A stretch of 64,000 nucleotides of DNA, from NCBI GenBank assembly GCA_029953675.1, contig JAMWBK010000010.1, positions 1 to 64,000 of the forward strand, written 5' to 3'. The stretch comes from Rhodosorus marinus CCMP1338. Lineage: Eukaryota > Plantae > Rhodophyta. Position 1 is the stretch's first letter, and each line of letters begins with the position of its first letter. A program made the position numbers and the translations under genes. Of the stretch, positions 3,296 to 53,134 are shown one piece after another. The notes under the pieces are model-generated. The model saw only the letters and a list, made by a program, of their open reading frames with translations, ran no database searches and was not told the DNA's origin.

Positions 3296-3327
3296 GTAAC
3301 CCCCAGACTCAAGTAACCCCAGACTAA
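3296..3327 (-). repeat. Degenerate interstitial telomere repeats at the 5' junction of the T element
   Basis: gtaacccccagactcaagtaaccccagactaa. Confidence 0.8.
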
Positions 3328-3336
3328 GTTGAAAGA

Positions 3337-27823: not shown

Positions 27824-30800
27824 GAACGAATGGTTTAATCGGAGGCTGAAAAAAAAAACCCGAGGGGAAAAAAAGACTAAGCGCGGCGAAGTACTCGCGC
27901 CTCCAACATCGAATGAATGGTTTAATCGGAGGCTGAAAAAAAAAACCCCCCGAGGGGAAAAAAAGACTAAGCGCGGCGAAGTACTCGCGCCTCCAACATC
28001 AAAGCGGCATTCATGCGCCACAGCAGGAAACTTAAGCGGGTAAACAACGATTGAAGACGGTCAGGGCGTTCGCGGAACAACTCCCGAAGCCAGCGAGAAC
28101 CAACAGAGTCCATGAACCCAAAGCACTCAATGATCAGGGGTACCAAGCGATGTGCTAGTGCCGAAGCACGAACACCAGGGGAAGACAAAGCCCCTCCAAC
28201 ATCAAAGCGGCATTCATGCGCCACAGCAGGAAACTTAAGCGGGTAAACAACGATTGAAGACGGTCAGGGCGTTCGCGGAACAACTCCCGAAGCCAGCGAG
28301 AACCAACAGAGTCCATGAACCCAAAGCACTCAATGATCAGGGGTACCAAACGATGTGCTAGTGCCGAAGCACGAACACCAGGGGAAGACAAAGCCCCCGC
28401 GTATTTGATCTCTTTGCGGCGTCTCATGCTGGCGGCGGCAGATCCACGGCGCTCCCCCGCAGCCGGGAGATAACGACTAGCTTGAGGGTTAGGAACAGCA
28501 AGATCAACGTATGTGGTACGGCGGCTGTCGTCACAGGTGATCACCAGGTCGGCTACACGGCGTTCATCATTTTGAAAGTCCGCGACGGGTAAAGGTTTCT
28601 CACGTTCGATTTCCAGACCGGCTTGCCGGACTATAGGCCGAAGTTCCCGGTATAACAGGTTCAAGATCCGTGTATGGCGGCGGATTCGAGCACCTTTCAC
28701 CGCCGGGCAACTAGCGAGCAGGTGGGCGCCAAAATCTGCGTTGTCTTCAGTCTGAGAGCAGAGAGGGCACGACGAACCCATCTCGTACGGCCAAGGGGGC
28801 TGATGTAAGCCGAGGTATAAGCGCAGTGAAGTACGCACTTCGAAATCCGACAGTGTGAGTGGCGGAAAGGCTGGTACGGTCATGAGCCACTGAGAGCTAA
28901 TAACCCCTCCAAGACTACGTAGGCGGGCGCGAGCGCGAGAAGATGAGACCATCTGTGCGAGGAGTCGGCCATATGCAGCACGGTGCAAGTCCCAAGAAAG
29001 GATATTTTGCAGCGCATCCGTGCGTGCTTGAGCTCGGCTCCCAGCGCGCTGGGAATCATCAGGAGGATCACCTGGAACTTCTTCTTCTGCGGCAACCACT
29101 GGGTCAATCTCCCCTAGAACAGGTTCAGGCGCAGGACGAATCCCCGGGGCGGAGCCTCGAGAGCGGTCAAATACAGCTCGCCAGTCAGGAAGACGGGGTT
29201 GAACCGTTTCGGGGAGACTAGTACAGGAATTCAGGGCGGTTTGGAGCTCCAGAAACAAGTCTTGGGCGCTTTCCGGTACGCTGGGAAGCAAGACACCCCG
29301 CGAGAGGCTCGCCATCAAATTGCGGAACTTCGAGATACCCAAGCTGCTCAAAGTGGGAAGTGCGGTACCCCAGGCCCCTACTGCGGCTGCAGGTTGGACC
29401 ACAACACGATTGCAGAGGCCCAGTCCCCCCAATCGCAATGGGAGGCCTACCTGGGCGCGCACAACATCACAGGTGGGTCGCGGCAGAGCGCTCAGCTCTT
29501 CATCGAGAAAATACCCCAGGTCACGGAAACTTTCAGCATCCGCACGAGTGGCCAACCACCGGCCCCAATGAGTTGGAAGTGAGCGAAGCCAATAGGTTAA
29601 CCGCTGACTGCAACAATACCGAAACAGCAACAACGAGCACTGGAGAAACCCCGGAGGTAGCCGTCGAAGCTCTGCAACCAGCTGTCTGTGCTTACCGAGG
29701 AGCTGCAGCAACTCGCCTTCAACGAAGGACGGCGACCCGTAGGGGATGCCTAAGTGGACAAAACCATCCGGTCTCCAAATATCCTGGAACGACGCAGGTA
29801 CCTGCTGCTCTTGTGCAGCTACACCTCCCCAGTAGAACGATTTGTGATGATTAACCTCCAGGTCAACCCGCGAAGCCCAGGAGCGGAGACGATCATAAGC
29901 GAGTGCTAGAGTATCAGGGGGCCCCAGGAGGCACACGTCGTCGTGGTATGCAACCGTACGAACCTGCGGGAATTCGGAGCGAAGACAAAGCAAGACGAGT
30001 TGTAGTCCACAGGCATGTAGGAAAGGGGACAAGGGATCACCCTGTTGTACCCCTGTGCGCGCCGCAAACGTGTGTGAGGAAGCGCCAAGGGTGTCATAGG
30101 TAGCCCCACGACCAAGCGGAGAATAAAGTCTACTAACAAAGGGAAAGCCTACAGGGAAGACTTCGCGCACCACGTGCATGAGGGCAGGACGAGAGACGCG
30201 GTTGAACGCATTGGTAAAATCTACAGAGAGGAGCCCAGAATCTGGGGAGTACGCCATTTCCGAACGGAGTAAAACAGACAACAACTCACAGCCACCACGA
30301 TAGCCCACGCCTAACTGCACGTGCCCAAAGAAACGGCGGGATTCGGGAACCAGGATTTTCACTAACCATCGCGCCGCCAATTTGCGGACCACCTCAACCA
30401 GGCCAATAGGGCGAATAGCAGGGCTCGAGGCCGTGTGGCCGGGCTTCGAAAGCAGACACAACTACGAACGCCCGACCAAGAACCACGCTCACTCACACAC
30501 AGGGGATCACCATTCACAAGCGCTTCGACCACCCACGCCAACGCCTTCAAACCTTCATCACTTAAGAAACGGAGATATTCCACCCGCAGCCCCGAGGGCC
30601 CTGGGGAACGGCCCTTCGGTGCATCATGAACCAACTCACGCAGCGCCTCCATATTGACCACTAACCGCGCACTGGGATGTGGCGCGGCGCGGTACTCTTC
30701 CAACACTGATTCAAACGAGGAGTCCCAAGGGGAGCCTTCCGAGGGAAAGAGCAAACGGAGCGGTGAAGAAAGATCATCGGAGTATGGAACCACAGGTTGC

Positions 30801-32519
30801 CGCTGCTGGAGGATCCCGGCTGCCCGCCGCAGATCACCGCCTGCCACCGCGTGACGCGCCCGATTCTGTCGAGAAGACCTAAAAGCTGAGGGAGCACTAG
30901 GAGAAAAGGAAGAGAGAGAAGCGAAATAAAGACGTTCGAGGTCCTCAAAGTCGCCGGAAAGGAACATTTGCAGTTTTCGGCGAGGGTGGACCCGGCGAGG
31001 ATGTGGGTTGAGGGGGACGGTAGAGGAGGTGAGCACGAGGCGGGGAAAAAAGAACAAGAGTTCCCAGCGAAGAGAGCAGTGAGGGTTCGCGGCGACCTGC
31101 TGCCAGAGAAAATCCAACACCAATCCTAGGGGCTTATGAAGTCGACGAGGGAGCCGTACGGCCGTGCTCTGACGACAAAGGGGAAGGGAACCGTCCGGGT
31201 AGGAGGCGACAAGGTGCGAAAACCACGAGAGAACACGCTCATGCCAGGCTGAGCGGTCACTGGTAAACAAGGGTAACCGGGACGACACGCACGCGGAGGA
31301 GGAAGACTCAGACATCGGGCCTCCCCTCAGTCGGGAAGGCAGATCGAATATCCGGAGGAGGTGCCTCGGAGGGAGGCTCAGGAGCCGCACGACGCTTACT
31401 TGGACGGCGCACGAAGGAACTAAAAGACCTGAAGAAAGTAGACACAGGGTTTTCAGCAGCGGAGTCTTGACTGAGGGTGTCCAGAGCCAGCGGATTCGGA
31501 GAGGCCGATGGTGCTTCTGCCATGTCGGTGTCACGAGCCTCGGAGACAGGGCGAGGGGAGGAAGGGTGCTCAAGAGTCGGCGGCAGAAGGTCAAACGCAG
31601 GGTGAGCTTCCAGCAGGGTGGCCTCAGTGGAGAGGAAGGCCTCTAGCGCGGTGCGGAGGACCCCGCGAGGAGGAAAACGCGCGAAGAGGCTCGCCTGTAT
31701 GCGCGAGAGCCGCGCCGCATGAGTGTGTAGCGCGACAACCGAAGCCTGCGAGGCATCCAGGTTTTGCAAGGCCGACGGAGGAACCCAGCCGGCGTCAAAA
31801 CGATCGAACTCGACAAACAAAGAGACATGAGGACGAGTCAGTATCATGTTGGCCAGAGCAGAGCGCTGGGGCGCGGGGGTGGTTACAAGCGATTGAAGGA
31901 ACTGGTGAGCCGAGTCAGTAACAAGAAAACAGGCATGAGGGCCCGTGAAGTCCACATATAGGAATTCAGACGGGGCGACCCCAAGGGAGGAAGCCATGGT
32001 GTCGCGAAAATCGCGGTAGTGGACGGGCGCGCGGCCCCGACCACGAGAGGGGGTCTGGGGACGCACGTTCGTCATCCAAGCAAAGTGGAACGGAGATAGT
32101 TGGCGAGAAGAGTCAATAGGGATGTGTTGTGGCATCATACGCACCATTGCCGTCGTGCGTTGTTCAGAAGAGCCCCTGCGTAGGACCTGCGAATAGGTCG
32201 CACGTGGGGCACTGGAGGGAGCAGGATTCGGGCCCGACGCGGGCCCAGGAGGAGTCTGTCCTTGAATAGGGGTAGGCCAGTCGGAATCAGGAATGACCGG
32301 AGCGGAGCGCTCGGGTCGGGTGGAGGCAGGCCCCGCTGTACCGTGCGGATCCGCGGGGACGGGCACCGGGGGGTATGGGGCAGGCGCGGAGGCGGAGAAG
32401 CGCTCCAAATAGGCGATCAGCAGGGGCAGGCGGTGTTCCTGGGAAGCAGTCACAAGAAGACTCGTCAGTTTCGAGCAGATCCCATGGGCTAACTCGTCAG
32501 CGCAGTCATAACCCTGGGG
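27824..32519 (-). mobile_element. Near-full-length family C element with reiterated 3' end and 10-bp TSD
   Basis: TSD gtgtataccc at 27814-27823 and 32520-32529. ORF1 31308-~32510. ORF2 31315-28155 (VDFTNAFNRVSR, GVQQGDPLSP, AYHDD, CCHC, RLE) with a stop and frameshift near 30430-30480. Confidence 0.9.
31308..32510 (-). CDS. Family C ORF1 (probably N-terminally truncated)
   Basis: Open frame of ~400 codons with TYSQVLR followed by WMTNVRPQT...RDFRDTMASSLG...YVDF. Its stop overlaps the ORF2 ATG (ATGTCTGA). Confidence 0.75.
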   Translation of the reverse strand, partial: YDCADELAHGICSKLTSLLVTASQEHRLPLLIAYLERFSASAPAPYPPVPVPADPHGTAGPASTRPERSAPVIPDSDWPTPIQGQTPPGPASGPNPAPSSAPRATYSQVLRRGSSEQRTTAMVRMMPQHIPIDSSRQLSPFHFAWMTNVRPQTPSRGRGRAPVHYRDFRDTMASSLGVAPSEFLYVDFTGPHACFLVTDSAHQFLQSLVTTPAPQRSALANMILTRPHVSLFVEFDRFDAGWVPPSALQNLDASQASVVALHTHAARLSRIQASLFARFPPRGVLRTALEAFLSTEATLLEAHPAFDLLPPTLEHPSSPRPVSEARDTDMAEAPSASPNPLALDTLSQDSAAENPVSTFFRSFSSFVRRPSKRRAAPEPPSEAPPPDIRSAFPTEGRPDV

Positions 32520-32529
32520 GTGTATACCC

Positions 32530-32547
32530 AGGGTTACGTTAGTCTGG
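32530..32547 (+). repeat. Interstitial telomere seed, G-rich on + (inverted relative to the chromosome end)
   Basis: gggttacgttagtctgg, a 17-nt perfect match. Confidence 0.8.
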
Positions 32548-32586
32548 CGCCAGCCCCGGGGCCGGCAGGCCGCGATACCCAATCAT

Positions 32587-34950
32587 ATGTTTGGTCATCT
32601 CCACACCTTGACATCTAACTTGGGACAGTCCCACGCGGAACAGTCACCTATGGGACAACCCGACTTGGGACAATCGAACTCGGGGACAGCAGTGGGACAG
32701 CCTGTGGGACAGGAGAACCCAGAATTCCCACCACTCGGACAGACACAGCTGCCACCTAGGGGTACATATGCACAACGGGCAGCTAAAGCCGCAGGTATGC
32801 GCCAGCAGACGACTCTCCGACAACACACTGCGCTGCGCCAACTGCATGCGACGGTAGGAGGCAGTAGATGGGGCCCGGAAACCCATCCGGTATTGGCACC
32901 CTGCGGAATGTTAGGCCGCCTCGCACGGAGCAGGTGGCGCTGTCAGACTACAAGAAGGTCCTCTGCACGGCGGAATATTAGGCCGCCTCGCACGGAGCAA
33001 GTGGCGCTATCAGACTACAAGAAGGTCCTCTGCACGACCTGGGACTCCTGGTACACTTGATCGCGCATATTGATTTTGTGGCCACACACGCGCTGCTCAT
33101 CTGCCACCCGGATGTCATCCCACTCCTCAGTAGTGCACTCGCGAGGGGAGTCTGAGTCTTCCGCACCGGAGTTTTGGCATCGTTCGCACAGCGGCGTCAC
33201 GACCACCAAGTGACGCTGCAGATGAGTCTCAAGCCCGAACCCCACAACCTGCTCGGGTACAACGAGAGACTCGGCCTGCGCCCGGAAGCAGTCGCATCAC
33301 GGGCTCTCGCCCGCGCTATTGAGCAGGTGGAACGAATCAAGCGCACGATGAATATGCGGGCTCTTCCGTTCACAACATCTGCCTCGATACATGCGTGTCT
33401 GGACGCACGACTGGAATATCTTAGCGCGGTACCCGTGGAGAGCGCGGAACCCCCAGTGCCTGCAGCCGCCACGAACGCAGACCCTGAAGCCTCGTCCCTT
33501 ACAGGGGACGCACAGGCAGGCCGTGGGACAGTCGATGCTCCGGGTAATCCCCTAGCGACTTCACAAGTACCTGAAGAATTCCCACCCGAGGATAACTCTC
33601 ACCCAGAGCTCCCCGTGCAAGCTCCCCGAGCCTCCTCAACACAAGCGGTCGGGAGTATCCATTGATGGCACAGGTCAGGATACCGAGATGGCTCTGGCAG
33701 TCGTAGAGACTCCACAGGGCAACACTGCACCACAGGCCGACCACACCGCCACCCATCACGCGATGGACACGCAGGACGGCCAGGAACGCGAACAGATATG
33801 AGTACAGGTGACTCCCGGAAGAGACTGCGCATTACACCGTTGACCACATTCGACCCAGGGACATTGCAGCACAAATTGATAGAGTTCCTGGAGACGCACA
33901 CCGATGGGGGACAAGGTTGGTGGAAAGTTACCCACAGTCCAGTACGGACCCGGGAACATGCGTCGAATGCCCAGGTCAAGAAATGGAACACGCTTCTATA
34001 CCAAACCTTCGGACTTGCCCTCGACACTGATGCTGATCCACTTCTTCGCGCTTTCATCATGGTATGACCAGGTCTCGCCCTCGGAAAGTGCGATCTCCAG
34101 CCAGGAGTGCAAGTTGAACATCTCATGGAAGGGGAATTTTCACAAGTATGGACGACACTCAACGTGAAGGCAGCGTGCCGACCTACGGCACGATCGCGAC
34201 GCTCTGATTGCCAGGGGGTAAAACGTCGCAATGCGCAAGTAATTCGGTTGGCCAACATTGGGAGACTTTCCGCCGCAGCCCAGAGACTTGAGGAAACGGA
34301 TCTCGCCCCTCTGAAAACATCTACCAGGCAGGCTCTCCGAGAGCTTTTCCCCGCTGAGCCAACCGCACGGCTACACGAGGAAGTGGAATTGGAGCTCCGA
34401 CGTATCCGCGAACAAGCCACCACACAACCTCCACGATGTGGAACCCCGCAGCAGCGAGCGACGAGTCCCTTCTCTCTGTGATCAACCGACTTCCAGCCAA
34501 AACGAGCCCCGGGCCCAGCGGACTGCGAGCAGAGCATCTCCACGCCGTTACACCTGCGAATAAGCCCAGATTGGTTGAATTCCTGCGACTCCTAGCGAGG
34601 AACCCTGAGTCGTTCCCGTCCATACTTCGGAAGGCCCTTCGCAGCAACGGTTGCTTCCGTTTATTAAACCACAAGCAGAAGGAGTGGCCGCTGAGAGACG
34701 CCTCCGACTGAGACCGATTGCCGTTCCAGAAGTTCTGGGGTTAGTTGGCTGCCCAGTGGGTACTTGGCGCAACCCCGGTCGACTGAGCGACCTCCTCTGA
34801 CCGGAACAGCTGGGGATCGCCGTTCGAAGCGGATGCGAACAACCCTTACACGCGGTACACGGCCATCTCTATTACGAACCACAACACGCCTTGCTAAAAC
34901 TGGACCTGGAGAATGAATTCAATAGGATTGACAGACGTCTGTCGGCGCAA
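32587..34950 (+). mobile_element. Diverged family T member (T2): ORF1 and 5' half of ORF2, degenerate and 3'-truncated
   Basis: LRQLHATVGGSRWGPETHPVL and HHAMDTQ match T ORF1. WKVTHSPVRTR..AQVKKW, RLANIGRLSAAA, PGPSGLRAEHL and LKLDLENEFNRIDRR match T ORF2. ATGA stop-start at 33798-33801. Confidence 0.82.
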
Positions 34951-34974: not shown

Positions 34975-37900
34975 AGCAGAGTGGTTAACCACAGGTGCGA
35001 GAGATGGCCTCCCATGCCGCGAATCCGAGCGGCGGTGATAGGCGGTGCGAGGGGAGAGTTGAGCAAGATTGCGTGAGCGGCACTGTGTTGGCCCCAGGTG
35101 AAGAAGCTCCACAATCGGCTCAGACCTGGGTAATCTGCAACAGGTAATCTGGGGCAAGCTTCTCCCTCATCGGCAAGAACTATGTCAATGGGTGAGCCCT
35201 CAATCGCCTCAGTTCGTCTCTATAGCAGTTCCTGCCAGGAGCGAAAACGGGATCGATTCTCGTCCGGCACGGCGTTGCACTTCCCGAACGCCTGTTGTAG
35301 ACCATCATAGATCGTCAAAAGCTGGAGCGAAAGGGTCACTGGGTCCTCGCTAGTCAGTGCTGGAGCCAAAAGGGAGGCAAATTGTATCCGGAAAGTCACC
35401 AGGGTACGGAGCGCGGTTGCCCAGGAGGCGACCGCCGTGAGCGAGCAGACGAGGCCCCGATCTGCGACACCAAATCCCCCTAAGCGCAACGGTAGAGCGA
35501 GCTGGCACGAACTAAGTCCCTGTCGGGAGCCGCTTCAAGATCGAGGGGTTCATCCACGAGCGTGCCCCAGTGGTTCAGCGTCATCTCGTGGGCCTTGGCG
35601 GCGATCCACGAACCCCATTCGGGTGGTAGGCTACGCAACAAGTAGTTCAGTGGGGGACCGGGCACAAAAGCGGGAAAGCAAGCAGGCCGATTGCAGCATG
35701 CTGTCTGGAAGGCGCCTAGTGGCGTCAGCGAGCTGCTTGTGGCGAGTCAAAACTTGTTCGCGAGAGGCTTGGACGAAGTTATTGCCTCCCGAAACCGACG
35801 CCGTGGTGCTCCAACCCTTCCCGTTCACCAATGGTTCGTAGATTAGATGACAGAGAGGCCATCGAAACTTCGAAACTTCACTTGGAGCGAGAAAACGACA
35901 CTTTTCGGGTTCCACGTCAGACCTACTCCACGTGCAATCGCTTCGATCTGGGTCAACCCCCGAGCCAGGGTTTCAGGGGCGCCCAGTAAGGTCACGTCGT
36001 CGTGATAGGCGTAGATACGAAGAGCCGGCACCTCAGTCGCGAGACGCAGGAGAACGAGCTGCAAGGCATGAAGTAAAGACCCACAAGGATTGCCTTGTTT
36101 GACTCCAGTATGTGCTTGGAAAACAGTGCCCTCCCTGGTGCAGTAGGGGAGGCTCCCCTTTCCGGAAAGACCAGAGAGGAAGGGCCACGCCTCCGGAAAA
36201 ACCCGTTCGGATCACCTCCAACGCATGCGTCCGCGAGACGCTGTTGAATGCGTTTCGAAAATCAACCACCAAAACTCCCCACTCCGGCCTACAGGCACGC
36301 TCCAGCTCGATCCCATGGGTGATCATTTCGCAACCCCCCGAAAATCCCACCCCCACTTGCAAGGGCGCCATAAAAGCTGTGACCCGCTGGCGAAGGCGCT
36401 GGCATAGCCACCTTCCAGCTAGCTCCGTAGGCTCTCGACCATACCGATCGGCCGGAGACGCGGGTGGGCCGGCTGATGGCCAGTCTTCGTGAGCAAGCAA
36501 AGTTGTGCCCTTCGGAGATGTTCCAATGGGGCAGACGCACCCGATGTGCCCTGGAACAGTTTGCCCAGGATCTTGAGCAGCGCGCTCCGGCCAGGCTTGC
36601 CCAAGGCCTGCAAAAATTCGGCTCGAAGCCCTGAGGGTCCAGGAAAGCGTCCACGACGCGAAGTACGAAGCAAATCCTCCAGATCAGACTCGTCGAGACT
36701 CAGGTCGATTGAAACCGGGACAACTCCGGACGACCCAAGAATGCCTCGAATTCGGGTAGCAAGTCCACGTCGGACGAGGGGAGCAAAGCTGACACGGTCT
36801 GGGCGAGACTTTGTTTGTAGGGAAGGACAGGCGCCTGGCCCTCCAGAACTCGCGCCGCTCGACTCAAGTCGCCCACCGCCACCAATTTCTGTACTCGAGC
36901 CGTCAGGGGCGAGACGCTTCCAACCCCCGTCCGACGAACGGATGGTTCCAACGACGGCAAGTAGCTTTGTTGAAACACCTCGAGTTCCCCCTTCAGGAAT
37001 ATGGCAAGCCAATCTCGGACACGCCATCTGCGCTCCGGCGTGTGAGTTGGGGCCAGAGTCAGGCGCGGCATGACCCCCAGAAATTCCCACATGACGGTGT
37101 CCCGAAGGTTACTCGCCAGACTCGTGAAGATGAAGTCCAGGATGGTCCCAGCCACTAAGAGCTCGCCGCGAGGTAGGTCGACAGGCGGAATTCTGCCACG
37201 GAGGGGAAGCAAGCCTCCTTCCAAAGATATCCAACGCCGGAGCCATCTTCGTAGACGCGTACGCCAAATGCCCTAGTCTCCGCCCTCCTTCACGACGTAA
37301 GACTGCAAATCCATCGGCTGCGACCTTGCAGCCGTACCCGGGCAGCTAATCGTGCTTCTCCCCCTTAGACCCGGGGGAGTAGGTCCTCGCACGTTTTCCG
37401 TTAACCTCACCAGAGTGGTCAGCCGCTCACTCCGCGAGGCTCGCGGATAGCTCCCTCGGGCTTCAAAAAAGTAATAGGGGCGTTCTCCACCGACATGCCC
37501 TCATTCTGCTCCCCGTCCTCACCACTCTCACTGGAAGCGTTGTTGGTTGCAAAGCCCTCTAATAACCCCCAGCCTCTGTAACTCCGCCGTGTGACTCGAG
37601 CTCAGCACAAGGCGCCTCTCCCGGTCGAAAAGGGTGGAGACGGCTGCACGCAGGTGGCGTGGCCCCGACGCGAAACGCTCCAAAAGTATACGCTCAATGC
37701 GGTGAATGCGTAGCCAATGGATGGCTGCGGCTTTCACGCTGGTCTCGTGCTGAGAGAGTCCTGCCGTTTCTCCGGGAGACAGGAAGGTGCCCGAGAAACG
37801 GTCAAAGTCAAAGTGCAGAACGACCTGGGGATGAGACCGCAACCAGCCGGGCACTCTCAGGACATTGCTCGGTAGACTTGGCCAGTAGAGCCTGCAGGTA

Positions 37901-38920
37901 CGTGGCCGTTGTTGCAGTGACCACGAAAAGAAGAACATCCCGGCCCTCGTAGTTCGCAAAAAGGAAGTCGTCTCGGACACGGCCCCAAGGACTCCGCGAA
38001 AGTATTCCGGAAATCACGCATGGATGGGACCTGGCCCCGTGTAGTCTAAAGCCGAACGTTTCGCACCCGAAGGAATTGCAAAGTAGTCGCATCAGGTCCG
38101 CCCTGCTGCTCGCGAGAGGGCAAAACTTTTTGCATAGCCGCCGTACGGGCGGCTGTGGTACCCTTCCGTAAAACCGAGGCGTACGACACGCCCCCCTTAG
38201 GGCCACCACGTGTCCCCGCCTTGTCCTGGAGCTGTCCCCCACCTGAGGGCTGGCCCAGCATAGGAAAGTCCGCTCCCGTTGAGGGGACGTGCAAAGGAGT
38301 AGAGCTAGCTGCACCCCTCCCCGAAGAGGCGCCACTCGAGGGACCACCAACAGCGGGCTCAGCAGCCCGCCCCTGTTCGGGGACAGTCGCAGAGTGACTG
38401 ACCCCTTGATTTTGACTGCCTCGCGGCCGCGTAGCCACCGTGGCCACCGTGTCAGATTTTAGAGCAAGCGCCAGGAGGCTGGATTCCAGCAAACCAAGGC
38501 GTTGGGTCAGCTGCGGCAGGACGCCCTTATCCCCCGCGGCGGTGGTTAGACTGGTGACGGCTGGCATTAGGGCTCGCATCTCCATACCAGTGGCGCCCTG
38601 CAGCTCCACCTGCGTAGAGAAAAGGCCCGAACTTAGACACACCCGGTGCCCAACCCCCAAGGACGCCTCGTTGCCAAGGAGCTCCGCTCCCGAGGGAGCA
38701 GGGCGCGAGGGTACCCCTACCATCATGAGAGAATTTAGTGACGATACTTTAACCACCAATTCCCCCGCCGAAAAAGCACACCACCCAACTCCACAGGAGA
38801 AAAATCCCCGTCGCGACCCAACACCAGAAGGTGAATGACCCGACTACCAACCACAAAACCCGAAAAAACGGGGGGAAAGCCGGCAGAGAGAAGCGACTTG
38901 ACACGCAAAACTACCAAAAA
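34975..38920 (-). mobile_element. Degenerate family A copy with 5' UTR, ORF1 and broken ORF2
   Basis: ORF1 N-terminus 38046-38759, RT motifs 35600-37300, A-poor 5' leader 38730-38915. Confidence 0.82.
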
Positions 38921-38974: not shown

Positions 38975-39900
38975 GGCCTTATTAGCATAGCCTAAAGCGC
39001 TACGCAAAGCGTGAAAAGGAACTAAGAACTAGGTAGGGAAGCGTCCAAACCCAGGCGCCGATGGCGCACCTCGACAAGCACGCTGCTCGAATATCGCCAC
39101 AGAGAGACACGTAAACGCCGCAAAAGTTCCAAGTATTCAACAGGATGCTCAGTGAAACATTTCCGCAACCACTCCAAACCCGACTTCTCCACGTGACCAA
39201 AAGTTTCCACACTGAAAGGCTGGAACCGGTGGGAGCGACCCTCAGCGCGAGGCAGATTGGCCATACTCTCAGCATACCGTCGTTCCTTCACTCGGCGAAG
39301 GGCCGAAGCAGCTGCTCCCCGGCGGCGTGCGGCAGCCGGGAGATGGGCGCTTGCCACAGGGCATGTAATCGCGAGGTCAACATATGCTGAGCGCCTGGCG
39401 GCAGCATCGGAGACGAGGAGATCTGCGATATAGCGGGGCGGTGCCCTATTCGAGACCGATCTGGGCAGTTCCGAATCCACCTCAACCGTATGCCCTACCC
39501 GAGTCAAACATTTGCTGAGAATGTACTTATAGCGAGTGTGACGCCTCGTAAGAAGACCTCTCAACAGTCCGCAGGAACCTAAGAAATAATAACCACAAGC
39601 ATCGATCCGAATCTCACATCCCTGACAGAAAGGCGGTCCATTAGAGTGCCGCGGAGCTTGTGGCAAACACAGGTAAATCCGTGCGGCAGAGCGAAACTGG
39701 CAGGCATCGAGACGGTGACCCAGTGAGGACGGCAGGGTCGTTCAACCACAAATGTGATAGATGGTCTCCCATGCCGCGGAGGCGAGCGGCGGTGGTAGGC
39801 GGTGTGAGGGGAGAGTTGAGCAAGATTGCGTGAGCAATCTTGCTGCACTGTGTTGGCCCCCAGGTGAGGCTACGTTGAACCACATCAGTGCGCGAGGCAG
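38975..39900 (-). mobile_element. Family A 3' fragment (RLE plus UTR)
   Basis: ORF 39022-39666 with RLE motifs. Confidence 0.85.
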
Positions 39901-39904
39901 CTCC

Positions 39905-42900
39905 ACAGTTTTTACTGGCTTTATTGGACTTTACTAGCATAGCCTGAAGCGCTACGCAAGGCGTGAAGATGAACTAATAACTAGGGAGGGAAGCATGCAA
40001 CCCCAGGCGCCGATGGCGCGCCTCGGAAAGCATGTCGCTGGAATATCGCCAAAGGGAGACACTTAAACGCCTCAAGAGCGCCAAATATTCAGTAGGATGC
40101 TCAGCAAAACATTTCCGCAACCACTCTAAACCCGACTTATCCACGTGACCAAAGCTTTCCACAATGAATGGCTGGAACCGGTGATAGCGACCCTCAGCGC
40201 AAGGCAGACTGGCCATGTTCTCAGCATACCGTCGTTCCTTAACTCTTCGAAGGGCTGAAGCCGCGGCCCCCCGGCGGCGGGCGGCTGCGGTGAGGTGGGG
40301 GCTGGCCACGGGGCAGGTAATCGCAGGGTCCACATATGTTGAGCGTCTGGCAGCAGCGTCGGAGACGAGGAGATCGGCTATACAACGGGGCGGTGCAGAG
40401 TCCGAGATTGATCTGGGCAGTTCCGACTCAACCTCAACCGTATGCCCTATCCGAGTCAAAAATTCGCTGAGGATGTACTTGAGGCGAGTGTGACGCCTCG
40501 TACGGAGACCTCTCAACAGTCCGCAGGAACCCAGGAAATGGTAGCCACAAGCGTCAATCCGGCTCTCACATCCCTGACAGAAAGACGGCCGATTAGAGTG
40601 CCACGGAGCCTGTGGCAAACCGAGATAGATCCGTGCGGCAGAACGGAACTGGAAAGCATCGAGACGATGACTCAATGACGACGGTAGAGTGGTTAACCAC
40701 AAGTGCGAGAGGTGGCCTCCCATGCCGCGGAGACGAGCGGCAGTGGTAGGCGGCGTGAGAGGAGAATTGAGCATGACTGTGTGAGCGGCACTGTGTTGGC
40801 CCCAGGTGAGGCTATGTTGAATCACATCAGTGCGGGAGCTCCACAATCGGCTCAAACCCGGGTAGTCTGCGATAGGTGACCCGGGGCTGGCCTCTCCGTC
40901 ATCGGCAAGAACTCGGTCGAGGGGAGAATCCTCAATCGATTCAGCTCGTCCCCATAACAGCTCCTTCCAGGAACGAAAGCGGGACCGATTTGCGTCCGGC
41001 AAGGCGTTGCACCTCCTGAACGCGTGTTGAAGACCATCATAAATTGTCAAAAGCGGGGTGGCAGGGTCACTGGATCCTCGTTGGTCAAAGCTCAAGCCAA
41101 GAGGCTTGCACTTCGCATCTGGAAGGTCACCAACGTTCGCAGCGCGGTAGCCCAGGAGGCAACCGCCGCTGGCGAGCATACCAGCCCACGGTCTGCGACG
41201 CCGAATCCCCCTAATCGCAACGGTAGAGCGATCTGTGCACGAATCAAGTCCCTGTCGGGAGCAGCTTCAAGATCGAGGGGCTCATCCAAGAGCGTTCCCC
41301 AGTGTTGCAGGGTCATCTCGTCGGCTTTAGCCGCGAACCACGAGCCCCAAGCTGGAGGCAGGCTGCGCAACCAGTAGTTGAGTCTGGGACCGGCACAAAA
41401 GCGGGAAAGCAAACAGGCCGATTGCAGCATTCTGTCGGGTAGGTGCTCAATGGCGTCGGTGAGTTGCTTGTGCCGTGCCAAAACTCGCTCGCAGGATGCT
41501 TGGACAAACTTGTCAGTCCCCAATCCGACGCCGTAGTGTTCGAACCCTTCACGTTCGCTGATTAGTCGCAGAGTGGGTGGCAGAGAGGCCAGCGACACGT
41601 CCCTCGGGGGGAGAAAGCGACATTTTTCCGTCTCCACAGTCAAACCGACGCGACGTGCAATCGCTTCGATCTCGGTCAGCCCCCTAGCCAGGGTGTCAGG
41701 GGTGCCCAGCAATGTTACGTCATCGTGGTACGCGCAGATTCGAAGATCCGAGACCTCAGTCGAAAGACGTAAAAGTACGAGCTGTAGGGCACAGGCATGA
41801 AGAAGAGGTCCGCAAGGGTCGCCTTGTTGGACGCCAGTATGTGCTTGAAAAACAGTGCCCTCCGTTGTCAAGTAGGGGAGGCTCTCCCCTCCGTAAACAC
41901 CCGATAGAAACGGCCACGCCTCCGGAAACACCCGTCGGAGCACCTCTAGCGCATGCGTCCGCGACACGCTGTTGAATGCGTTCCGGAAATCAACCACCAA
42001 GACTCCCCACTCCGGCCTACTGGCGCGTTCTAGCTCGATCCCATGGGTGATCAGTTCGCAAACCCCCGAAAATCCCACCCCTACTTGCAAGGGCGCCATA
42101 AAAGCTGTGACTCGCTGGCGAAGGCGCTGGCATAGCCACCTCCCGGCTAACTTCCGTAGGCTCTCCACCATCCCGATCGGCCGAGACGCGGGTGGGCCGG
42201 CTGGTCGTCAGGTTTCGTGAGCAAGCAAAGCTGTGCCTGCCGGAGATGTTCCCATGGCGCAGACGCACCCGATACGCCCTGGAACAACTTGCTAAGGATC
42301 CTCAGAAGCGCGCTCTGGCCAGGCTGGCTCAGGGCCTGCAATAGCTCTGTTCTTAGTCCGGAGGGTCCGGGACAGCGTCCCCGACGCGAGGTACGAAGCA
42401 AATCCTCCAGGTCAGACTCACTGAGCGTCAGATCGATGCGAAACCTGGCCAACTCCGGACGGTCCAAGAATACCTCGAATTCAGGGGACAAGTCCACGTC
42501 GGACTCGGGGAAAGCTGCGCTGTAGTACTTCGAAGTCTCCCTTCAAGAACAGGGCCAGTCGGTCTCGTACTCGCCATCTGCGCTCCGATGTGTGAATGGG
42601 GGCCAGAATCAGGCGCGGCATGACCCCCAGAAAAACCCAAATGACTGTGTCCCGAATGTTGCGAGCCAGGCTCGTGAAGATGAAATCGAGAATGGTTCCA
42701 GCTACTAGAAGGTCTCCACGAGGGAGGACGACTGGGGGAATGCCCCCACGGAGGGGAAGCGAGCCTCCTTCCAAAGAAATCCACCGCCGGAGCCAACTCC
42801 GAAAACGCGTACGCCAAATGCCCCAGTCTCCGCCCTCCTTCAGGACATAGCACTGTAGATCCATAGGATGCGACCTCGCAGCCGTGCCTGGAGCGCTAAT

Positions 42901-44560
42901 CGTGCTTCTCCCCCTTAGACCCGGGGGAGTCGGTCCTCGCTCTCTTACCTCCTATCCGCACCAAAGTCGTGAGCCGCCCACTCCGCGAGGCTCGCGGAAC
43001 GGATCCCGCGGGCTTCAGCAAAGTAACCTGGGCGTCCTCCACCGCCATGCCCTCAGTCTGCTTCCCTGCCTCACCACTCTCGCTGGAAGTGGTGCTGGAA
43101 GCAGAGCCCTCCAAAATCCCCAACCGCTGCAGCTCTGTCTTGTAGCGCGAAGTCAGCACAAGTCGCCTCTCCAGATCGAAGAAGCTGGACACCGCCATGC
43201 GCAGGTGACGAGGGCCCGACCGGAACCGCTCCAACAAGATCCTCTCAAGGCGCTGAATCCGTAGCCAATGGATCGCTGCCGCCTTCACGCTGCTCTCATG
43301 CTCAGAGAGCCCTGCCGTTTCTCCCGGAGACAGGAAATTGCCCGAGAAACGGTCAAAATCCAAGTGCAAAACCACCTGCGGGTTGCAGCGCAGCCACCGG
43401 GCGCTCTCAGGCCACTGCTCGGTAGGCTTCGCCAGCAAGGCCTCCAGGTACTTGGCGGCGGTTGCGGAGACCAAAAACAGCACATCGCGGCCCTCATAGT
43501 TTGCGAAGAAGAAATCACCCCGGCTGCACCCTAACGATTCCGCAAAAGTGTCCCGGAAGTCTCGCATAGACGGAACCTGGCCTCGTGTAGTCTGGGGCCG
43601 GACATTTCGCCCCCACAGAAATTGGAGAGTGGTCTCCACAGGTCCATCCTGAGGCTCGCGAGATGGTAGGAAACGGAGCATAGCCGCCGGACGTGTGGCA
43701 GTGGTGCCCTTCCGCAAGACTGAGGCGTACGAAGCCCCCCCCTTGCGGCCACCACGTGCCCCCGCAGTAGCCCGGAGCTGGTGACCACCTGAGGGCTGGT
43801 CGAAGAGAGGGAAGTCCACAGCTGCAGTCTCCTCCACACCGGTTGCCGCACAGTCACCACCACCATTGCCTCGAGTCCCCGAGCGCTGAAGCGCGTTTTG
43901 GCCCGGCCTGCCGCTCCCCAACGTCGTGCTGTCCCGCGCAGAAGCAACCGCCCTCGCCTGTCCCGGGACAGGTTCATGTTGATTGACCTGATGTTGACTG
44001 CCTTCAGCCAACGCTGCCACTCTGGGGCAATTCAAATTCTCGTCCGAATTTGAATTTGACCTGGCCAGCAATCCCGATTCCAGCCCACCTAGCTTCTGGG
44101 TGAGCTGAGGGAGCACTCCACGATCACTCGCAGCCGTGATCAGGCTGGCGACAGCGGAGATAAGTGCACGCGCCTGGGTGCCAGAAGCGCCTTCCAAGTC
44201 AACCTCGGAAGAAAACGTGCCGCAGCTGAGGCGAACACGGAGTCCCCCACCTGGCAGTGCCTCCTTGGGAGGAGGCTCCGTCGAGCGCGGAGATATCCCT
44301 ACCATCCTGAGGGAATGCGCAAAGGAAACGTTGCACCACCAATGTGAAACCGCACCGAGACAATAATCGACCAAACCCAACCCAAATAGGAAAGGCCCCG
44401 CAACACACCCACCCGGAAGACAGAAGTAGTTGCAAATGCAAACGACGCACCGCGGAAAATCGAGGGGAAGGCGTACCAGAGGAAGCGCTTCCCGTAAACG
44501 AACACGCTCGCGACCGAAAAAGAAACAAAACCCCAATCCTCAGCCAGACCACAATACTCT
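39905..44560 (-). mobile_element. Longest family A (A1) copy: 5' UTR, intact ORF1, ORF2 with an internal deletion near 42510 and a TGA at 41092
   Basis: Nearly identical by eye to 12877-16335 over the shared length. Tail AGTAAAGTCC-AATAAAGCC-AGTAAAAA at 39910-39937. Confidence 0.9.
42896..44305 (-). CDS. Family A ORF1 (469 aa), candidate RNA-binding/chaperone protein
   Basis: First ATG (MVGISPRSTEP) at 44305. SYASVLRKG then FLWGRNVRPQTT..RDFRDTFAESLG. The basic C-terminus ends 31 nt before the ORF2 ATG. Confidence 0.8.
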   Translation of the reverse strand: MVGISPRSTEPPPKEALPGGGLRVRLSCGTFSSEVDLEGASGTQARALISAVASLITAASDRGVLPQLTQKLGGLESGLLARSNSNSDENLNCPRVAALAEGSQHQVNQHEPVPGQARAVASARDSTTLGSGRPGQNALQRSGTRGNGGGDCAATGVEETAAVDFPLFDQPSGGHQLRATAGARGGRKGGASYASVLRKGTTATRPAAMLRFLPSREPQDGPVETTLQFLWGRNVRPQTTRGQVPSMRDFRDTFAESLGCSRGDFFFANYEGRDVLFLVSATAAKYLEALLAKPTEQWPESARWLRCNPQVVLHLDFDRFSGNFLSPGETAGLSEHESSVKAAAIHWLRIQRLERILLERFRSGPRHLRMAVSSFFDLERRLVLTSRYKTELQRLGILEGSASSTTSSESGEAGKQTEGMAVEDAQVTLLKPAGSVPRASRSGRLTTLVRIGGKRARTDSPGSKGEKHD

Positions 44561-45020
44561 AGCGCTGAAAGTAAAACTGAAGTGCTAGGATGGCATTTGT
44601 ATCAGCAACTCTGACAAAGTCCTCCTGGTGAGGGAGTCGCTTCGATTGTACACGTTTGCTAACACTCCTCAAAGTGACGCCCTTTGTTTAGGATTCTCAG
44701 CTTGGCTCGGTCTGTTGAATTTCGTCGTTTCTAGCGCCTTCTTGAGTATATCCGTGACTTGCTCCTGGGTTGGGATGAATAGGAACTCGTGGCTTCTAGG
44801 TCGTGTCGCTGTCGTGAAAATTGGTACTGAAATTCAATATGCTTAGGCAGCGGCTTTTCCAGGTCTATGCTCCAGGTGAGAGGCAGTGTTGTCTGAGAAG
44901 ACCACATCGATCTCCGCCAGTAAGTTCTTCACCCACTGTACTTTCTGAAGTCCGTACGTCAGGGCAATATATTCTGCTTGGCTTGATGAAGTCGCGATGA
45001 TTTTCTGCTTCTTGCTAATG

Positions 45021-48767: not shown

Positions 48768-51700
48768 GTAAGCTTTACTGGGCAGCTGCCTACTGCAGCG
48801 CAACACTACGTCTAATCCTATCTAGGGAGAAACTTACTGGAACCCCGCTACCGGGGTCTCATGCTACGTTCAAAAGAAAAAACAGGCACCAGCGGATTCT
48901 CCAGCTGGTCCACGCGCAAAGCGCCTAATGCTATCTCCGCGTTACCTCGCCATAGTTGCCGGTTTATCTGGGATCTCACGTCTCTCAGCTCCTCACTCCT
49001 GTGCAGTAGGTGTTTGCAGCTGTCGCGGAGGAACTCTTGTGCCATTTGCCCCGTACGCCCAAATGTCTCTATCGCTATCGGGATGAACTTATCATCCGGT
49101 TTCTCGATCACCATCGCTTCTTTGTAGTGAGCGATTTTCCACTTCTCCGCAGCTCTCGCCGCGTATCCGCTATCATCTTGGCTCCTCCGCAAATATTTTC
49201 CCTGTAATGGTGACACCACCGTCACATCCAGCGCATACCTTTGTTTGGTCCTCGGATGCCTAGCAACGATATCAGGTCGCAGTCCGTAGTTCTCGAAGTA
49301 CCCCTCAGGTTCTTGCTCTACGTCCATGAAGTTCCATCGCCTTAGCCATCGTGCCAGCTCTCTGCAGATTTCGTCATGCCTACGTTGCCACAGTCCAGTT
49401 GATGTTGGGCAGTGATGAAACCGTTGTACCCCAGTCCTTCCGTGTTTACTCCGGCAACTAGTGCACTTCTCGGTGGTCCGCAATCCCGGAATTGGCAGAC
49501 CCAGCAGTTGTCGAACGTTTACCTGCATCTCAACCGCACTCAATTTTTTCGGTGTCAGCGTTGGTATTTCATGTAGCCAGACTCCCGACCCGGATCCCGC
49601 GGCAGACCGTATTCGAGCTCGGTTTTCAGGGGAGATTCGTGGGTTGGTGACCAGCTTTTGGAATGCACAATGGTGTGCCTCTCGAGAGAAGGTTTGTTGT
49701 ATTGAACCATTATTACAAGCTGCAGTCTCGCCCGGGGCGCTTCGAAGAGGTGTTTCGCGTGGTTGTTGCAGGGTAGTCAGTGCCAAGATCCGCGGCGGGG
49801 TTTCTGGTCCGAGCCTCCGTTGTATTGCTCGCGACGATGCACAGATCTGGTCCGCCAGCTGTGCAGTCGACCATCGTTGATCCATCGGCTCGTATGTGTC
49901 TGGTGAGCGTTCTGCCGTAACCTCCCGCTCTAGTTCAGTCAGGTATGGCCATTCATCTTCATTGTTCCGGAAGGTGTTTCTCCATGACGAGTAAAACGCG
50001 ATGGGTTGGACGCGCTTTCGAGTAGCGAAACCCAAACCTCCCCAGCGGCAGGGCAGAGCGATTTGGTCCGAGATCAGCTCTGCGTACTCATCGTCCTCTA
50101 CAGCTGTCGTAGCGAGGCCTCCGAATAGAATTTCCAGGTGATATCTGGTCATCACGTCGGCCTCGCGTGCCAGATTTCTTCCAAACTCGTATGCGAGGCA
50201 TCGTAGCACATAGTCTAGTCGCGTTTCTGCACAGAACCTGAAGAGGGCAATTTGCGTCGTAAGCTCCGGTTGCGGGAGCTTGGCAATTTCCTCAAAGAGT
50301 TTCTCATGCTTATTTTGCAACCCCCGGCACTCCTGTTCGATATATTCTCGGCTGCCTATCGGTATCGAGTGGATGGTGACTCCGTCTCTGGTCACTTGCA
50401 CTCCAGGAATCTCATGGTTGACCACTCGCGTGGTAGTCAGTGTTCGCCCGTACACAGTGCACTTGCCGAGTTGCAGGCGTGCTCCAAGAGAGGGGAGCAC
50501 AGTTTTTGCCCATGCCAGGGACGCCTTCACGGCTTGTAGCGACCCGACAATCGTGATATCGTCGTGGATAGCAACAATCGTTTCGTTGGGGAACTTGGCT
50601 CGCAACGCTCTTAGAAAGGGCGCCAGGGATAGTGCATGTAGCACCGGCCCCAGTGGATCTCCCTGTTGGACTCCTGTAGTTGCTTGGAGAGTCAGGCGGG
50701 AGGTGTCGGTTTCGTTCTGTCCAGGGGAAGATCGCCAGCCACAGAGCGTCGGTGAGTCCGCGTTGTCGCTTCCATAGCCAAGTCTATACACTGGTGCAAG
50801 TTCCGGCAAGTGTTCGTCCACCAGTTGCTTGGCAAGGCGTCGGTCGATGCGATTAAAGGCATTCTCAAGGTCTAAGCGAAGGACCACCGAATCGGGTTCG
50901 CATGACAAATGGGCCTGGATCGCGTGAAGCGAGCGTTCGCACCCGCCACTTACTCCGATACCCAGTTGTAAGGGCACCAGGAGCTCACGCACCCTGTCCA
51001 TAACCGCGTGAAGAGTCCATTGCGTTGCTACCTTGCGCAAAACTTCTGGTACTCCGATAGGCGAACTCCGGGATGCTCCTGCGGCACTGAACCCTTGTTA
51101 GGCTTCGTGAACGGCAGGAGTCGACTACTGCGAAGGGCGCGGGTCAGAGCCGGGGAAAATTTCTCAGGAGCGGTCGCCAGTTGTCGCAATACACGAATCA
51201 ACGCCACTTGCGTCTGTTGGGTTGCACCTTGGAGGTGTTCCGCTCGGAGACCGCTAGGACCTGGGCTCTTGCCCTGAGGAAGACGTGCCACGATCGACAT
51301 GAGGCCCTCGTCGGCCGCTTTTTTTGAATCCCACCCCCGCTTTAGTGTTTCGGTATTCAGAGCGAGCAAAGATTGCAGTGCGTGTGCAATCTCGTCTGGT
51401 AAGTCACCTTCCGCCGGGTTGGGAAAGAGCGTAGTTGTCTCCACGTAGCCGCGGTAAAAGGTGCCATTTCGGTGGCCTGTAGGCTCCGAGCTGCATCTGA
51501 AAGGCGGCCAAGGTGTGCTAGTTTCAGCGCTCGCTTGTGGCGCCCGAGATGTTTGCGTCGAGCCGCTTAAGCTCCTTGCGGTGCGGTAGTATACCATTCA
51601 TTCAGTATGCGACAGCATAGACGCCTTGTCCTCTAGAGCGCTCCAGACCGTAGAGAATTCTCCTTCAAGCACATGCGATACCTGAATGCCAACATCAAGT

Positions 51701-52058
51701 GCAGAGTGTCCAAGGACAAGGCCTGGAAGTCCGACAAAGAGCAGGTTGGCGTTTGCTGGTGCGGTGCTGTCCATAGAGAGCTCTATGGCAGCACGGAAGA
51801 GGCAGCTCCATGTGTGAACCTGGGCGCGTGGCACAAATCGCCGTGTGGGAACCGGGCAGTGTGTAAGGCGCGTCCACTGCCTGCCTCCTTCCGTGACGTC
51901 GTCGACGAAGACGCTCCACCGCCTGATCCAGTCTTGACGATCCGAGAAGAATAGAGGCTCTTCGCGGCGTCGTTTGATTCCCCTACGTCTGCTCGGCATT
52001 ATTGCGCTGGGTGTTCCTGGCTCTCCTGCGTGTCCATCGCGTGATGGTTGCCGTCAAC
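48768..52058 (-). mobile_element. Family T element (5'-truncated in ORF1, complete ORF2 span) inserted in copia integrase at a telomere-like site
   Basis: Splits AEYWVT|FTDEVSR. TSD ggtaacc (48761-48767, 52059-52065). Confidence 0.92.
48848..51040 (-). CDS. Family T ORF2 core: RT, zinc finger and restriction-like endonuclease (upstream part frameshifted)
   Basis: LRLDLENAFNRIDR, GVQQGDPLGP, AIHDD, LPCRWGGLG, CTSC...HC, RRHDEI, RPDI..LDV..KIAHY..PIAIETFG. Confidence 0.88.
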   Translation of the reverse strand: MRKVATQWTLHAVMDRVRELLVPLQLGIGVSGGCERSLHAIQAHLSCEPDSVVLRLDLENAFNRIDRRLAKQLVDEHLPELAPVYRLGYGSDNADSPTLCGWRSSPGQNETDTSRLTLQATTGVQQGDPLGPVLHALSLAPFLRALRAKFPNETIVAIHDDITIVGSLQAVKASLAWAKTVLPSLGARLQLGKCTVYGRTLTTTRVVNHEIPGVQVTRDGVTIHSIPIGSREYIEQECRGLQNKHEKLFEEIAKLPQPELTTQIALFRFCAETRLDYVLRCLAYEFGRNLAREADVMTRYHLEILFGGLATTAVEDDEYAELISDQIALPCRWGGLGFATRKRVQPIAFYSSWRNTFRNNEDEWPYLTELEREVTAERSPDTYEPMDQRWSTAQLADQICASSRAIQRRLGPETPPRILALTTLQQPRETPLRSAPGETAACNNGSIQQTFSREAHHCAFQKLVTNPRISPENRARIRSAAGSGSGVWLHEIPTLTPKKLSAVEMQVNVRQLLGLPIPGLRTTEKCTSCRSKHGRTGVQRFHHCPTSTGLWQRRHDEICRELARWLRRWNFMDVEQEPEGYFENYGLRPDIVARHPRTKQRYALDVTVVSPLQGKYLRRSQDDSGYAARAAEKWKIAHYKEAMVIEKPDDKFIPIAIETFGRTGQMAQEFLRDSCKHLLHRSEELRDVRSQINRQLWRGNAEIALGALRVDQLENPLVPVFSFERSMRPR

Positions 52059-53134
52059 GGTAACCCAGTATTCTGCTCCTTTCGATTTGGACAGCTTTCC
52101 GCAGACGTCCGTGTGAATCGTCTCTCCAGGGCGACTCGCGTGTGCCAGTGTTCCTGCCCGGATTCCTCGTCTTAGTTTTGCTACCGTACATGTTTCACAG
52201 TCCGGGGTTGACGATGCCGGTTGGATCTGTTTCACTTTCTGCCAGTCCGTGTGACCTAGCTTTCGGTGTAGTTTGCTTAGGTCACGCATTGAGTTTAGTT
52301 GCTGACTTTTCGTTGTCCACGACGCCAGTATCTACGTGCTGTTTATCAGCTTTGCGCTTGCAACCACTGCCCCTCCTTTTTCGTAGAATTTACAACCTTT
52401 CCTATCGAAATTGACATTGTATCCTTTCTTCACAATGGCAGGCACAGGCACAGATAGGTAGTTTCCCTCGAGGCCAGGTAGGTATAAATCGTCCTCGATC
52501 GTTATTGGTTGTCGCTTATCGCCAACTGTCGTTGCGATGACCACTGTTCCTTTTTCATTTCCGCTGATCGTTCGTTGGTCTGGGAGAGTTACAGTATTGA
52601 TCTTAGATTCCTTGATTGTCGCGAACAAAATTCGTTGACCGAGCATGTGGGACGTTGCTCCGGAGTCGATGACTATGTCGTTTGGATTTGCGCTGAAGCC
52701 TAGTGCAAATAGGGTTTCTTTGTCCGGTTCCTTGTTGCGGCGTTGGAAATTCTTGCTCCGGCACTCCTTTTGGAAATGTCCATATCGGTTGCACTTCTGG
52801 TATTTGATGTGTGCCTTGCATTGTGCTGTTCTGTGGTTGTGCCTTCCACATTTTTCGCGCTTTCGACTTTTGCTTTTGAACTGCATGCGCATGATCGCGT
52901 GCTCGTTGGGTTTTGATGTTTGCGTTGGCCCTTGAACACCTCCCAGGCGGGCTCTCATGGTTTCCCAGTCGATTTTGGTCCTTCGAAATGTTCGTCAGGC
53001 CTTCGATGGTTGCATCGAGGACGCTTTCATCCTTCAGGATCAGGCATATGTGACCCAAACGGTGTATGGCTTTGTACTCTGTTGTATCGAGTTTAAATAC
53101 TTTAGAGTAGTATTCTTCGAGCCATGTGAGTAGC

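Follow-up and report, generated by a model that had tools for sequence, protein, structure and literature searches.

We analyzed a window of 64,000 nucleotides from the red alga Rhodosorus marinus CCMP1338 (contig JAMWBK010000010.1, positions 1 to 64,000) and focused on the open reading frame (ORF) at 42896-44305 on its reverse strand. This is the ORF1 of a retrotransposon family, here called A, and it runs from its first ATG to its stop codon without an internal stop; ORF2 of the same element follows it. The window as a whole is a nest of two-ORF elements of the restriction-like endonuclease (RLE) type and Copia-like fragments, and two further RLE families in it, C and T, carry ORF1s of their own (Table 1). 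A sequence-only reading, made without database searches, had aligned peptides from the ORF1s of A, C and T and proposed that the three share one unrecognized domain. All of the quoted peptides are present in the six-frame translation (A, 43469-43732(-); C, 31920-32198(-); T, 2356-2490(-)), and there is a second T copy of the quoted peptide at 32901(+).

The shared module was confirmed. The ORF1s of A and C align by BLASTP with an E-value of 3e-33 and 36% identity over ~200 amino acids. The shared module is thus ~200 amino acids long rather than the ~90 first proposed, and comprises a core similar to an RNA recognition motif (RRM) and a helical hairpin. T matched only weakly in pairwise comparisons, C at E 8e-7 over 44 amino acids and A at E 0.003. 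In a hidden Markov model search of the whole window in six frames, the best non-self match of the A/C profile was T and that of the T profile was C, at matching positions. When the profiles were enlarged with relatives from public data, hhalign joined the A/C and T groups with a probability of 88.9% (E 2.4e-6) over 151 columns that cover the core and the helices that follow it. Frameshifted copies entered these alignments as frameshift-joined conceptual sequences. On another contig, a 503-amino-acid ORF1 (P0011) has a core like that of T (E 1e-11) together with an N-terminal module like that of A (E 6e-4; tblastn against the window), which links the architectures. A helical patch that A and C had been thought to share near their N-termini (A, 44102-44158; C, 32418-32474) was not significant, with 3.2 bits and an E-value of ~7 against the A-type N-terminal profile.

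The resulting ORF1 protein (ORF1p) architecture is common to at least five lineages: A, C and T in the window and, outside it, P0011/L004 and the metagenomic contig L006. In A, C, T, P0011 and L006, the core is preceded at a distance of 40-110 residues by a motif [ST][YF]Ax[VR]. In the alignment, a hydrophobic strand b1 leads into N-[VIL]-R-P, which is invariant across lineages; helix a1 ends in LG, strand b3 reads [RH]-x-[VA]-x-[FL]-[LV], and helix a2 is rich in alanine and leucine. In all six lineages the module has a basic pI, 9.9-11.1. The C-terminal tail is otherwise acidic and proline-rich, and near its end the intact copies of every lineage have K[KR]x[RA] (KRAR, KRRA, KRSR, KKAR, KKPR or KRVR); the decayed copy T2 has KRSG at this position. 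As judged from its residues, the tail motif would fit a monopartite nuclear localization signal.

We next consider how widely the module occurs; in public data it is rare. Among 1.84 billion representative proteins, searched exhaustively with a HMMER profile, 11 relatives were found. Two are named Rhodosorus marinus, namely KAJ8903743.1, annotated as a hypothetical protein, and a EukProt entry with MMETSP codes (CAMPEP/MMETSP0315); the rest come from short Logan/JGI contigs. A word-index homology search with the full-length A ORF1 gave no match. The order ORF1-then-ORF2 recurs on contigs L001, L003 and L004. A search with ORF2 led to L006 (ENA ERZ1740070, contig NODE_10134), which encodes a complete ORF2 of 1155 amino acids (1170-4637) that is 35% identical to that of family C. 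The ORF upstream of it (1-1170) also belongs to the ORF1 family, as a divergent member that scores 40.8 bits with the family profile and has the motifs SFAAV and DNIRP. In the retrieved sequence of two more distant RLE elements, L007 and L008, we detected no ORF1-family member. Two JGI contigs, L001 and L002 (JGI 3300016967; 3.3-4.2 kb), have an identical ORF1 and differ in their downstream parts; this ORF1 is T-like and is joined to ORF2 by an ATGA junction, with several frameshifts. These two contigs may be transcripts. The sequence-only reading had also asked whether the module might be an already described ORF1 of the CRE clade. By an indirect test there was no strong match to one: none of the 11 profile relatives carries a trypanosomatid name, and searches of Pfam and the PDB came back empty. 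Collectively, these data define the ORF1 module as a new protein family, a variant on the theme of the ORF1p of long interspersed nuclear elements (LINEs) that is carried on an RLE-type chassis in a red-algal lineage that has been little studied.

Selection on the module was measured from the ratio of nonsynonymous to synonymous substitution (dN/dS) among copies, a check that the sequence-only reading had proposed. We used the Nei-Gojobori method in four pairwise comparisons, setting the intact family A copy (A1) against three diverged window copies and one related contig. The RRM-like core had dN/dS values of 0.04-0.14 at dS of ~0.8-2, the helical hairpin 0.11-0.30, the N-terminal module 0.19-0.27, and the linkers and tail 0.3-0.7. 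The low values in the core point to strong purifying selection: the module stayed under constraint as a protein during the diversification of the families. Most copies in the window are now dead, with frameshifts or stops, and the protein sequences of some are 97-98% identical. Together with family peptides in the MMETSP-coded EukProt entry, a presumed transcriptome, these near-identical copies suggest that the elements were recently active and are expressed.

The identity of the elements was established from ORF2. Pfam RVT_1 matched ORF2 of A (2e-14), C (3.4e-12) and the T element called X (1.3e-7). By phmmer, the nearest PDB relatives of the family C ORF2 are R2 proteins, which match in the reverse transcriptase (RT; E 1.8e-10) and in a C-terminal CCHC/RLE segment, with residues 568-608 aligned to the start of the R2 CCHC/RLE. 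The motifs CX2CX9-11HX4C and R(R/H)..D..D can be read directly from the ORF2 sequences. The ORF2 N-termini had no Pfam match to the endonuclease/exonuclease/phosphatase family of apurinic/apyrimidinic endonucleases (APE). Since ORF2 has RVT_1, an R2-like RT with a CCHC/RLE segment and no APE match, we classify the elements as RLE-type retrotransposons without long terminal repeats (non-LTR) that have two ORFs. RLE-type or "ancient" LINEs have been described as having one ORF, zinc-finger and Myb motifs at the N-terminus for DNA binding, and site-specific insertion (PMC5678591). The elements studied here depart from that description. Every family has a separate ORF1, and the ~280-345 residues that precede the RT had no Pfam match to a zinc finger or Myb domain in four lineages, in keeping with the earlier remark that no N-terminal zinc fingers are visible. 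Among the few insertions in the window, copies have different 3' flanks and lie nested inside one another and within a Copia element. Retrotransposons go unmentioned in the paper on the Rhodosorus marinus genome.

ORF1 and ORF2 are closely spaced or overlap in all families. The 31-nt spacing of family A also occurs in the related contig L003 and at 13100-13160 in the window. In family C the ATG of ORF2 overlaps the ORF1 stop (ATGTCTGA, 31308-31315). T1, the T/X copy and L006 have a TAATG junction, and T2 and L001 have ATGA; the junction of L004 is ATGCCCAGTGA. In the LINE SART1, ORF1 and ORF2 are joined by a UAAUG overlap (PMC3894237).

To ask what fold the module might adopt, we built two AlphaFold2 models, one of the 209-residue module (43127-43753; 7-sequence alignment) and one of the full-length protein (12 sequences). 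By DSSP, both are predicted to have the order b1-a1-b2-b3-a2-(short a)-b4 and then a hairpin of two helices. The predicted local distance difference test (pLDDT) score was ~80-95 over most of residues 40-209 in the module run and ~78-91 over the domain in the full-length run, with a drop at strand b1 and in the following loop. The helical hairpin had values of ~81-91. The full-length run added an N-terminal beta-hairpin with two helices at pLDDT ~60-67, and its long linkers and tail are predicted to be disordered. In Foldseek searches against the PDB, the two lists were mostly led by RRMs, with E-values of 0.04-0.5 and target-normalized TM-scores of ~0.4-0.6. They included RRM1/2 of RBM30 (probability 0.82-0.93) and the RRM-like domains of DbpA and YxiN (up to 0.96), as well as the RRM-like domain of CsdA, ACF, Mex67, the Pof8 C-terminal domain and qRRMs. 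Human L1 ORF1p ranked 12th (E 0.24; 2ykq, rmsd 15.9). Among 20 ORF1 members, a single match to Pfam xRRM was found at E <= 10 (E 0.24). In the RRM consensus, RNP2 reads "..GNLP", helix a1 ends in "FG" and RNP1 lies on b3; strand b1 with its N-[VIL]-R-P resembles such an RNP2 in sequence, and apart from the degenerate RNP1 the arrangement read from the alignment is like that of an RRM. An RRM-like ferredoxin fold is the best-supported assignment, short of statistical proof. The early suggestion of a divergent RRM stands insofar as the predicted topology and the RRM-rich Foldseek lists agree with it, and falls short in its E-values and in its RNP1.

Two other candidates arose from the structural searches. 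Against predicted viral structures, Foldseek with the module model gave no significant match; several of the top matches were models of the baculovirus protein FP25K ("few polyhedra"), the best with probability 0.97 and E 0.067 over 87 columns. These could point to a shared RRM-like module, and a search of the literature for a connection between FP25K and LINE ORF1 yielded nothing pertinent. We also considered a transposase of the HUH/IS200 type and rejected it, as its Foldseek probabilities were low and the lineages share no conserved H-hydrophobic-H motif.

Taken together, we think it probable that the region encodes the ORF1p of a bicistronic RLE-type LINE, which binds its own RNA through an RRM-like domain. 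From N- to C-terminus, this protein would consist of a beta-hairpin/two-helix module, a long disordered linker with [ST][YF]AxV, a basic, non-canonical RRM-like core (ferredoxin-like b-a-b-b-a-b, with N-x-R-P after strand 1), the helical hairpin and the tail. In the model that we favor, ORF1p would be made from the bicistronic RNA of the element, and ORF2 would be translated by termination-reinitiation at overlapping or closely spaced stop and start codons (UAAUG, AUGA, AUGNNNUGA or the 31-nt spacer). Reinitiation at the ORF2 AUG would keep the ORF2 protein (ORF2p) scarce. ORF1p would bind the element RNA via its basic RRM-like domain and, within a ribonucleoprotein (RNP), serve the RT/RLE protein as a partner for packaging and as a chaperone. 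The N-terminal module and the helical hairpin may mediate self-association or contact ORF2p, and the tail motif could aid nuclear entry of the RNP, after which the R2-like RT/RLE protein would perform target-primed reverse transcription. What the analysis shows are the reading frames with their junctions, the homology among families, purifying selection, the lack of matches to known families, the predicted fold, the basic charge and the motifs; RNA binding, chaperone activity, oligomerization, nuclear import and the mode of ORF2 translation are inferred. The functional analogy rests on ORF1 proteins of APE-type LINEs, in which ORF1p is an RRM-containing RNA binder (PMC4120745, PMC3894237).

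Several observations weigh against this reading. The 20 ORF1 members had no Pfam match to RRM_1, Transposase_22 or a DUF at E <= 10, only noise, and a sequence and profile search of the PDB with the ORF1 module had no match at E <= 10. None of the Foldseek matches in the PDB reached E <= 0.001 (best E, 0.04-0.1), and the same lists held other ferredoxin-like folds, including NIPSNAP, the IA-2 ectodomain and IS200 TnpA. Both AlphaFold2 models were built on shallow alignments of 7-12 sequences. RNP1 on b3 is degenerate, its aromatic positions are not conserved, and the conserved helical hairpin after the core could pack on the sheet. Finally, RNA structure downstream of the stop/start junctions was no more stable than that of shuffled sequences (z +0.3 to +1.4), unlike in SART1.

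A ferredoxin-like domain on a separate protein might instead recognize DNA, serving in trans as the target-binding subunit that replaces the zinc-finger and Myb motifs of single-ORF RLE elements. RLE-type LINEs have been described as needing such N-terminal motifs for DNA binding (PMC5678591), and the lack of a Pfam match to either in the ORF2 N-terminal regions of four lineages would leave a vacancy that the strongly basic domain could fill; IS200-type transposases of single-stranded DNA, moreover, appear low in the Foldseek lists. The insertions speak against such a role. The few window copies are nested in each other and in the Copia element and show no common target, and there would consequently be no sequence-specific targeting to explain. 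In addition, the best structural neighbors are RNA-binding RRMs, and the probabilities for IS200 were 0.14-0.25. We consider a DNA-binding subunit unlikely.

The degenerate RNP1 and the hairpin that could cover the sheet would also be expected if ORF1p were mainly a scaffold or oligomerization protein for ORF2p or host factors, with the core a protein-protein module such as a U2AF homology motif (UHM) or an occluded RRM, and the N-terminal helices are indeed conserved under selection. A pI of 10-11 and the invariant arginine of N-x-R-P favor contact with nucleic acid, however, and the characterized LINE ORF1 proteins that have RRMs all bind RNA (PMC4120745, PMC3894237), which makes a pure scaffold improbable in our judgment. 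We dismiss the idea that the similarity is due to chance, or to decaying non-coding 5' sequence shared by descent and without a functional domain: the damaged state of most window copies and the weak pairwise match between T and A would suit it, but it is refuted by the dN/dS of the core and is at odds with the full-length open ORF1s of A1 and P0011, with protein homology that remains where DNA similarity is gone, and with a confidently predicted fold. An RNA-binding ORF1p thus remains the reading that we prefer.

Table 1. Positions of the ORF1 and ORF2 features of families A, C and T in the window.
Feature	Position	Strand	Remarks
Family A ORF1, intact (A1)	42896..44305	-	469 aa; ATG at 44305, stop 42896-42898; whole-module profile match
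A1 N-terminal module, residues 22-83	44057..44242	-	Predicted beta-hairpin and two helices
A1 [ST][YF]Ax[VR] motif, SYASVLRK	43709..43732	-	Low confidence in AlphaFold2 model
A1 RRM-like core, residues 227-315	43361..43627	-	b1-a1-b2-b3-a2-(a)-b4; from AlphaFold2, alignment and dN/dS
A1 helical hairpin after core, residues 335-384	43154..43303	-	From AlphaFold2; aligned across A, C and T
A1 KRAR, basic motif resembling a nuclear localization signal	42935..42946	-	In disordered C-terminal tail; read from sequence
Spacer between ORF1 stop and ORF2 ATG (42862-42864)	42865..42895	-	31 nt
Family A ORF2 (RT, CCHC knuckle, RLE)	39974..42864	-	ATG-initiated; frameshifted in this copy
A-type ORF1 copy A2	4825..5733	-	Frameshifts
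A-type ORF1 copy A3	21118..22302	-	Frameshifts
A-type ORF1 copy A4	37349..38789	-	Frameshifts and stops
A-type ORF1 tail	12879..13100	+	97% identical to A1; then ORF2 of 5'-truncated element, 13160-16227
Family C ORF1, 5'-truncated	31308..32582	-	Shared module ~31578-32219
Family C ORF2	28155..31315	-	One frameshift near 30362-30461
Family T ORF1 copy T1	1644..2865	-	Frameshift near 2263; module ~2034-2670; TAATG stop/start 1642-1646
Family T ORF1 copy T2, decayed	32587..33801	+	66-nt internal duplication; ATGA stop/start 33798-33801
Family T element X	48848..52064	-	End of ORF1 tail, TAATG 51997-52001, ORF2 down to 48848

The elements show further signs of their history in the window. At their 3' ends the LINEs carry short tails of tandem repeats instead of poly(A) (16228-16400(+), 53817-53900(+), 39880-39973(-) and ~560-820(-)). 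In family A, a conserved 3' untranslated region (UTR) of ~50 nt is followed by (AGTAAAGTCC/AGTCC)n, and over 15 copies of GGGGTTACGTTAGTCT come after the T/X copy that ends at 922. The last ~70 codons of ORF2 and the 3' UTR of a family C copy are partially duplicated at 27979-28197(-), and the C-terminus of the family C ORF2 differs from that of a 98%-identical copy at 7216-8271. In T2, a segment of ~66 nt that encodes NVRPPRTEQVALSDYKKVLC is tandemly duplicated at 32901-33033(+), within the RRM-like region. The T/X element is 5'-truncated within the ORF1 tail and sits in a Copia-like integrase frame (..HTDVCGKLSKSKGAEY|WVTVDG..) at 51997-52070(-); other RT fragments that are Copia-like are present at 44843-48261(-). 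No Rfam family or tRNA was detected when the window was scanned for them.

Reviews have treated ORF1 as a later acquisition of APE-type LINEs (PMC3894237, PMC5678591). The elements described here could be the first RLE-type LINEs, a class that normally has a single ORF, shown with an RRM-type ORF1p and stop/start translational coupling, a claim of priority that we put forward tentatively. If an ORF1p of the RRM kind on RLE elements is borne out, such proteins either predate the switch from RLE to APE or arose independently of it, or else deep LINE lineages have swapped ORF1 modules; in either case, the textbook view that ties the arrival of ORF1 to APE would not hold for red algae. Should the RRM assignment and RNA binding hold, these elements would provide a test case for whether ORF1p function evolved once or repeatedly and for what ORF1p contributes to target-primed reverse transcription. 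The analysis also defines a family whose members in Rhodosorus marinus have so far been annotated only as "hypothetical protein". Given the narrow taxonomic range and a function that is only predicted, its significance is moderate and chiefly of interest to transposon specialists.

How does this ORF1 compare with known ones? LINE ORF1 proteins have been sorted into type I (RRM and CCHC), type II (coiled coil, RRM and C-terminal domain (CTD)), type III (PHD) and type IV (esterase), all from APE clades (PMC4120745). The present ORF1 fits none of these, with no CCHC knuckle, Transposase_22, PHD or esterase. One close analogy is to the type II ORF1p of L1 (Transposase_22, PF02994; PDB 2ykq and 2yko). 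Like that protein, it is basic and is the first ORF product of a bicistronic LINE; its helical N-terminal part is followed by one non-canonical domain of predicted RRM-like fold and by another module at the C-terminus, and it presumably serves to form the RNP. Unlike L1 ORF1p, to which it has no sequence or Pfam match, it is predicted to have two short helices rather than a long coiled coil and a helical hairpin in place of the CTD, and its element encodes a C-terminal RLE where L1 has an N-terminal APE.

In the Khazina and Weichenrieder classification, type I ORF1 proteins of the I, Jockey, R1, Tad1 and plant L1 clades have one or more RRMs followed by CCHC knuckles (PMC4120745). The predicted RRM-type fold is a point of likeness, and the UAAUG overlap of SART1, an R1-clade element, recurs in family T (PMC3894237). 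The ORF1s studied here differ in having only one RRM-like domain and in belonging to RLE-type elements, and a direct reading of all ORF1 sequences found no CCHC knuckle (CX2CX4HX4C).

Among RLE-type LINEs themselves, separate ORF1s have a precedent in SLACS and CZAR, trypanosome elements of the CRE clade with two ORFs. These insert site-specifically in spliced-leader genes (PMC5814959). The elements here are likewise RLE-type non-LTR elements with two ORFs but are not inserted in spliced-leader genes. The 11 profile relatives included no named trypanosomatid, in a library drawn from sources that include NCBI nr and UniRef and in which the presence of the SLACS/CZAR ORF1 is unconfirmed.

In its RT and C-terminal CCHC/RLE, ORF2 is most similar to R2 (PDB 9nl3 and 9dou), a single-ORF RLE LINE that has zinc-finger and Myb motifs at the N-terminus and inserts site-specifically in ribosomal DNA (PMC5678591). 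Here, by contrast, there is a separate ORF1, no match to zinc-finger or Myb domains, and insertions that are dispersed and nested in the window. At least five related RLE lineages with a selected, bicistronically coupled ORF1 that has a predicted RRM-like core would thus amount to an L1-like lifestyle on an R2-like chassis.

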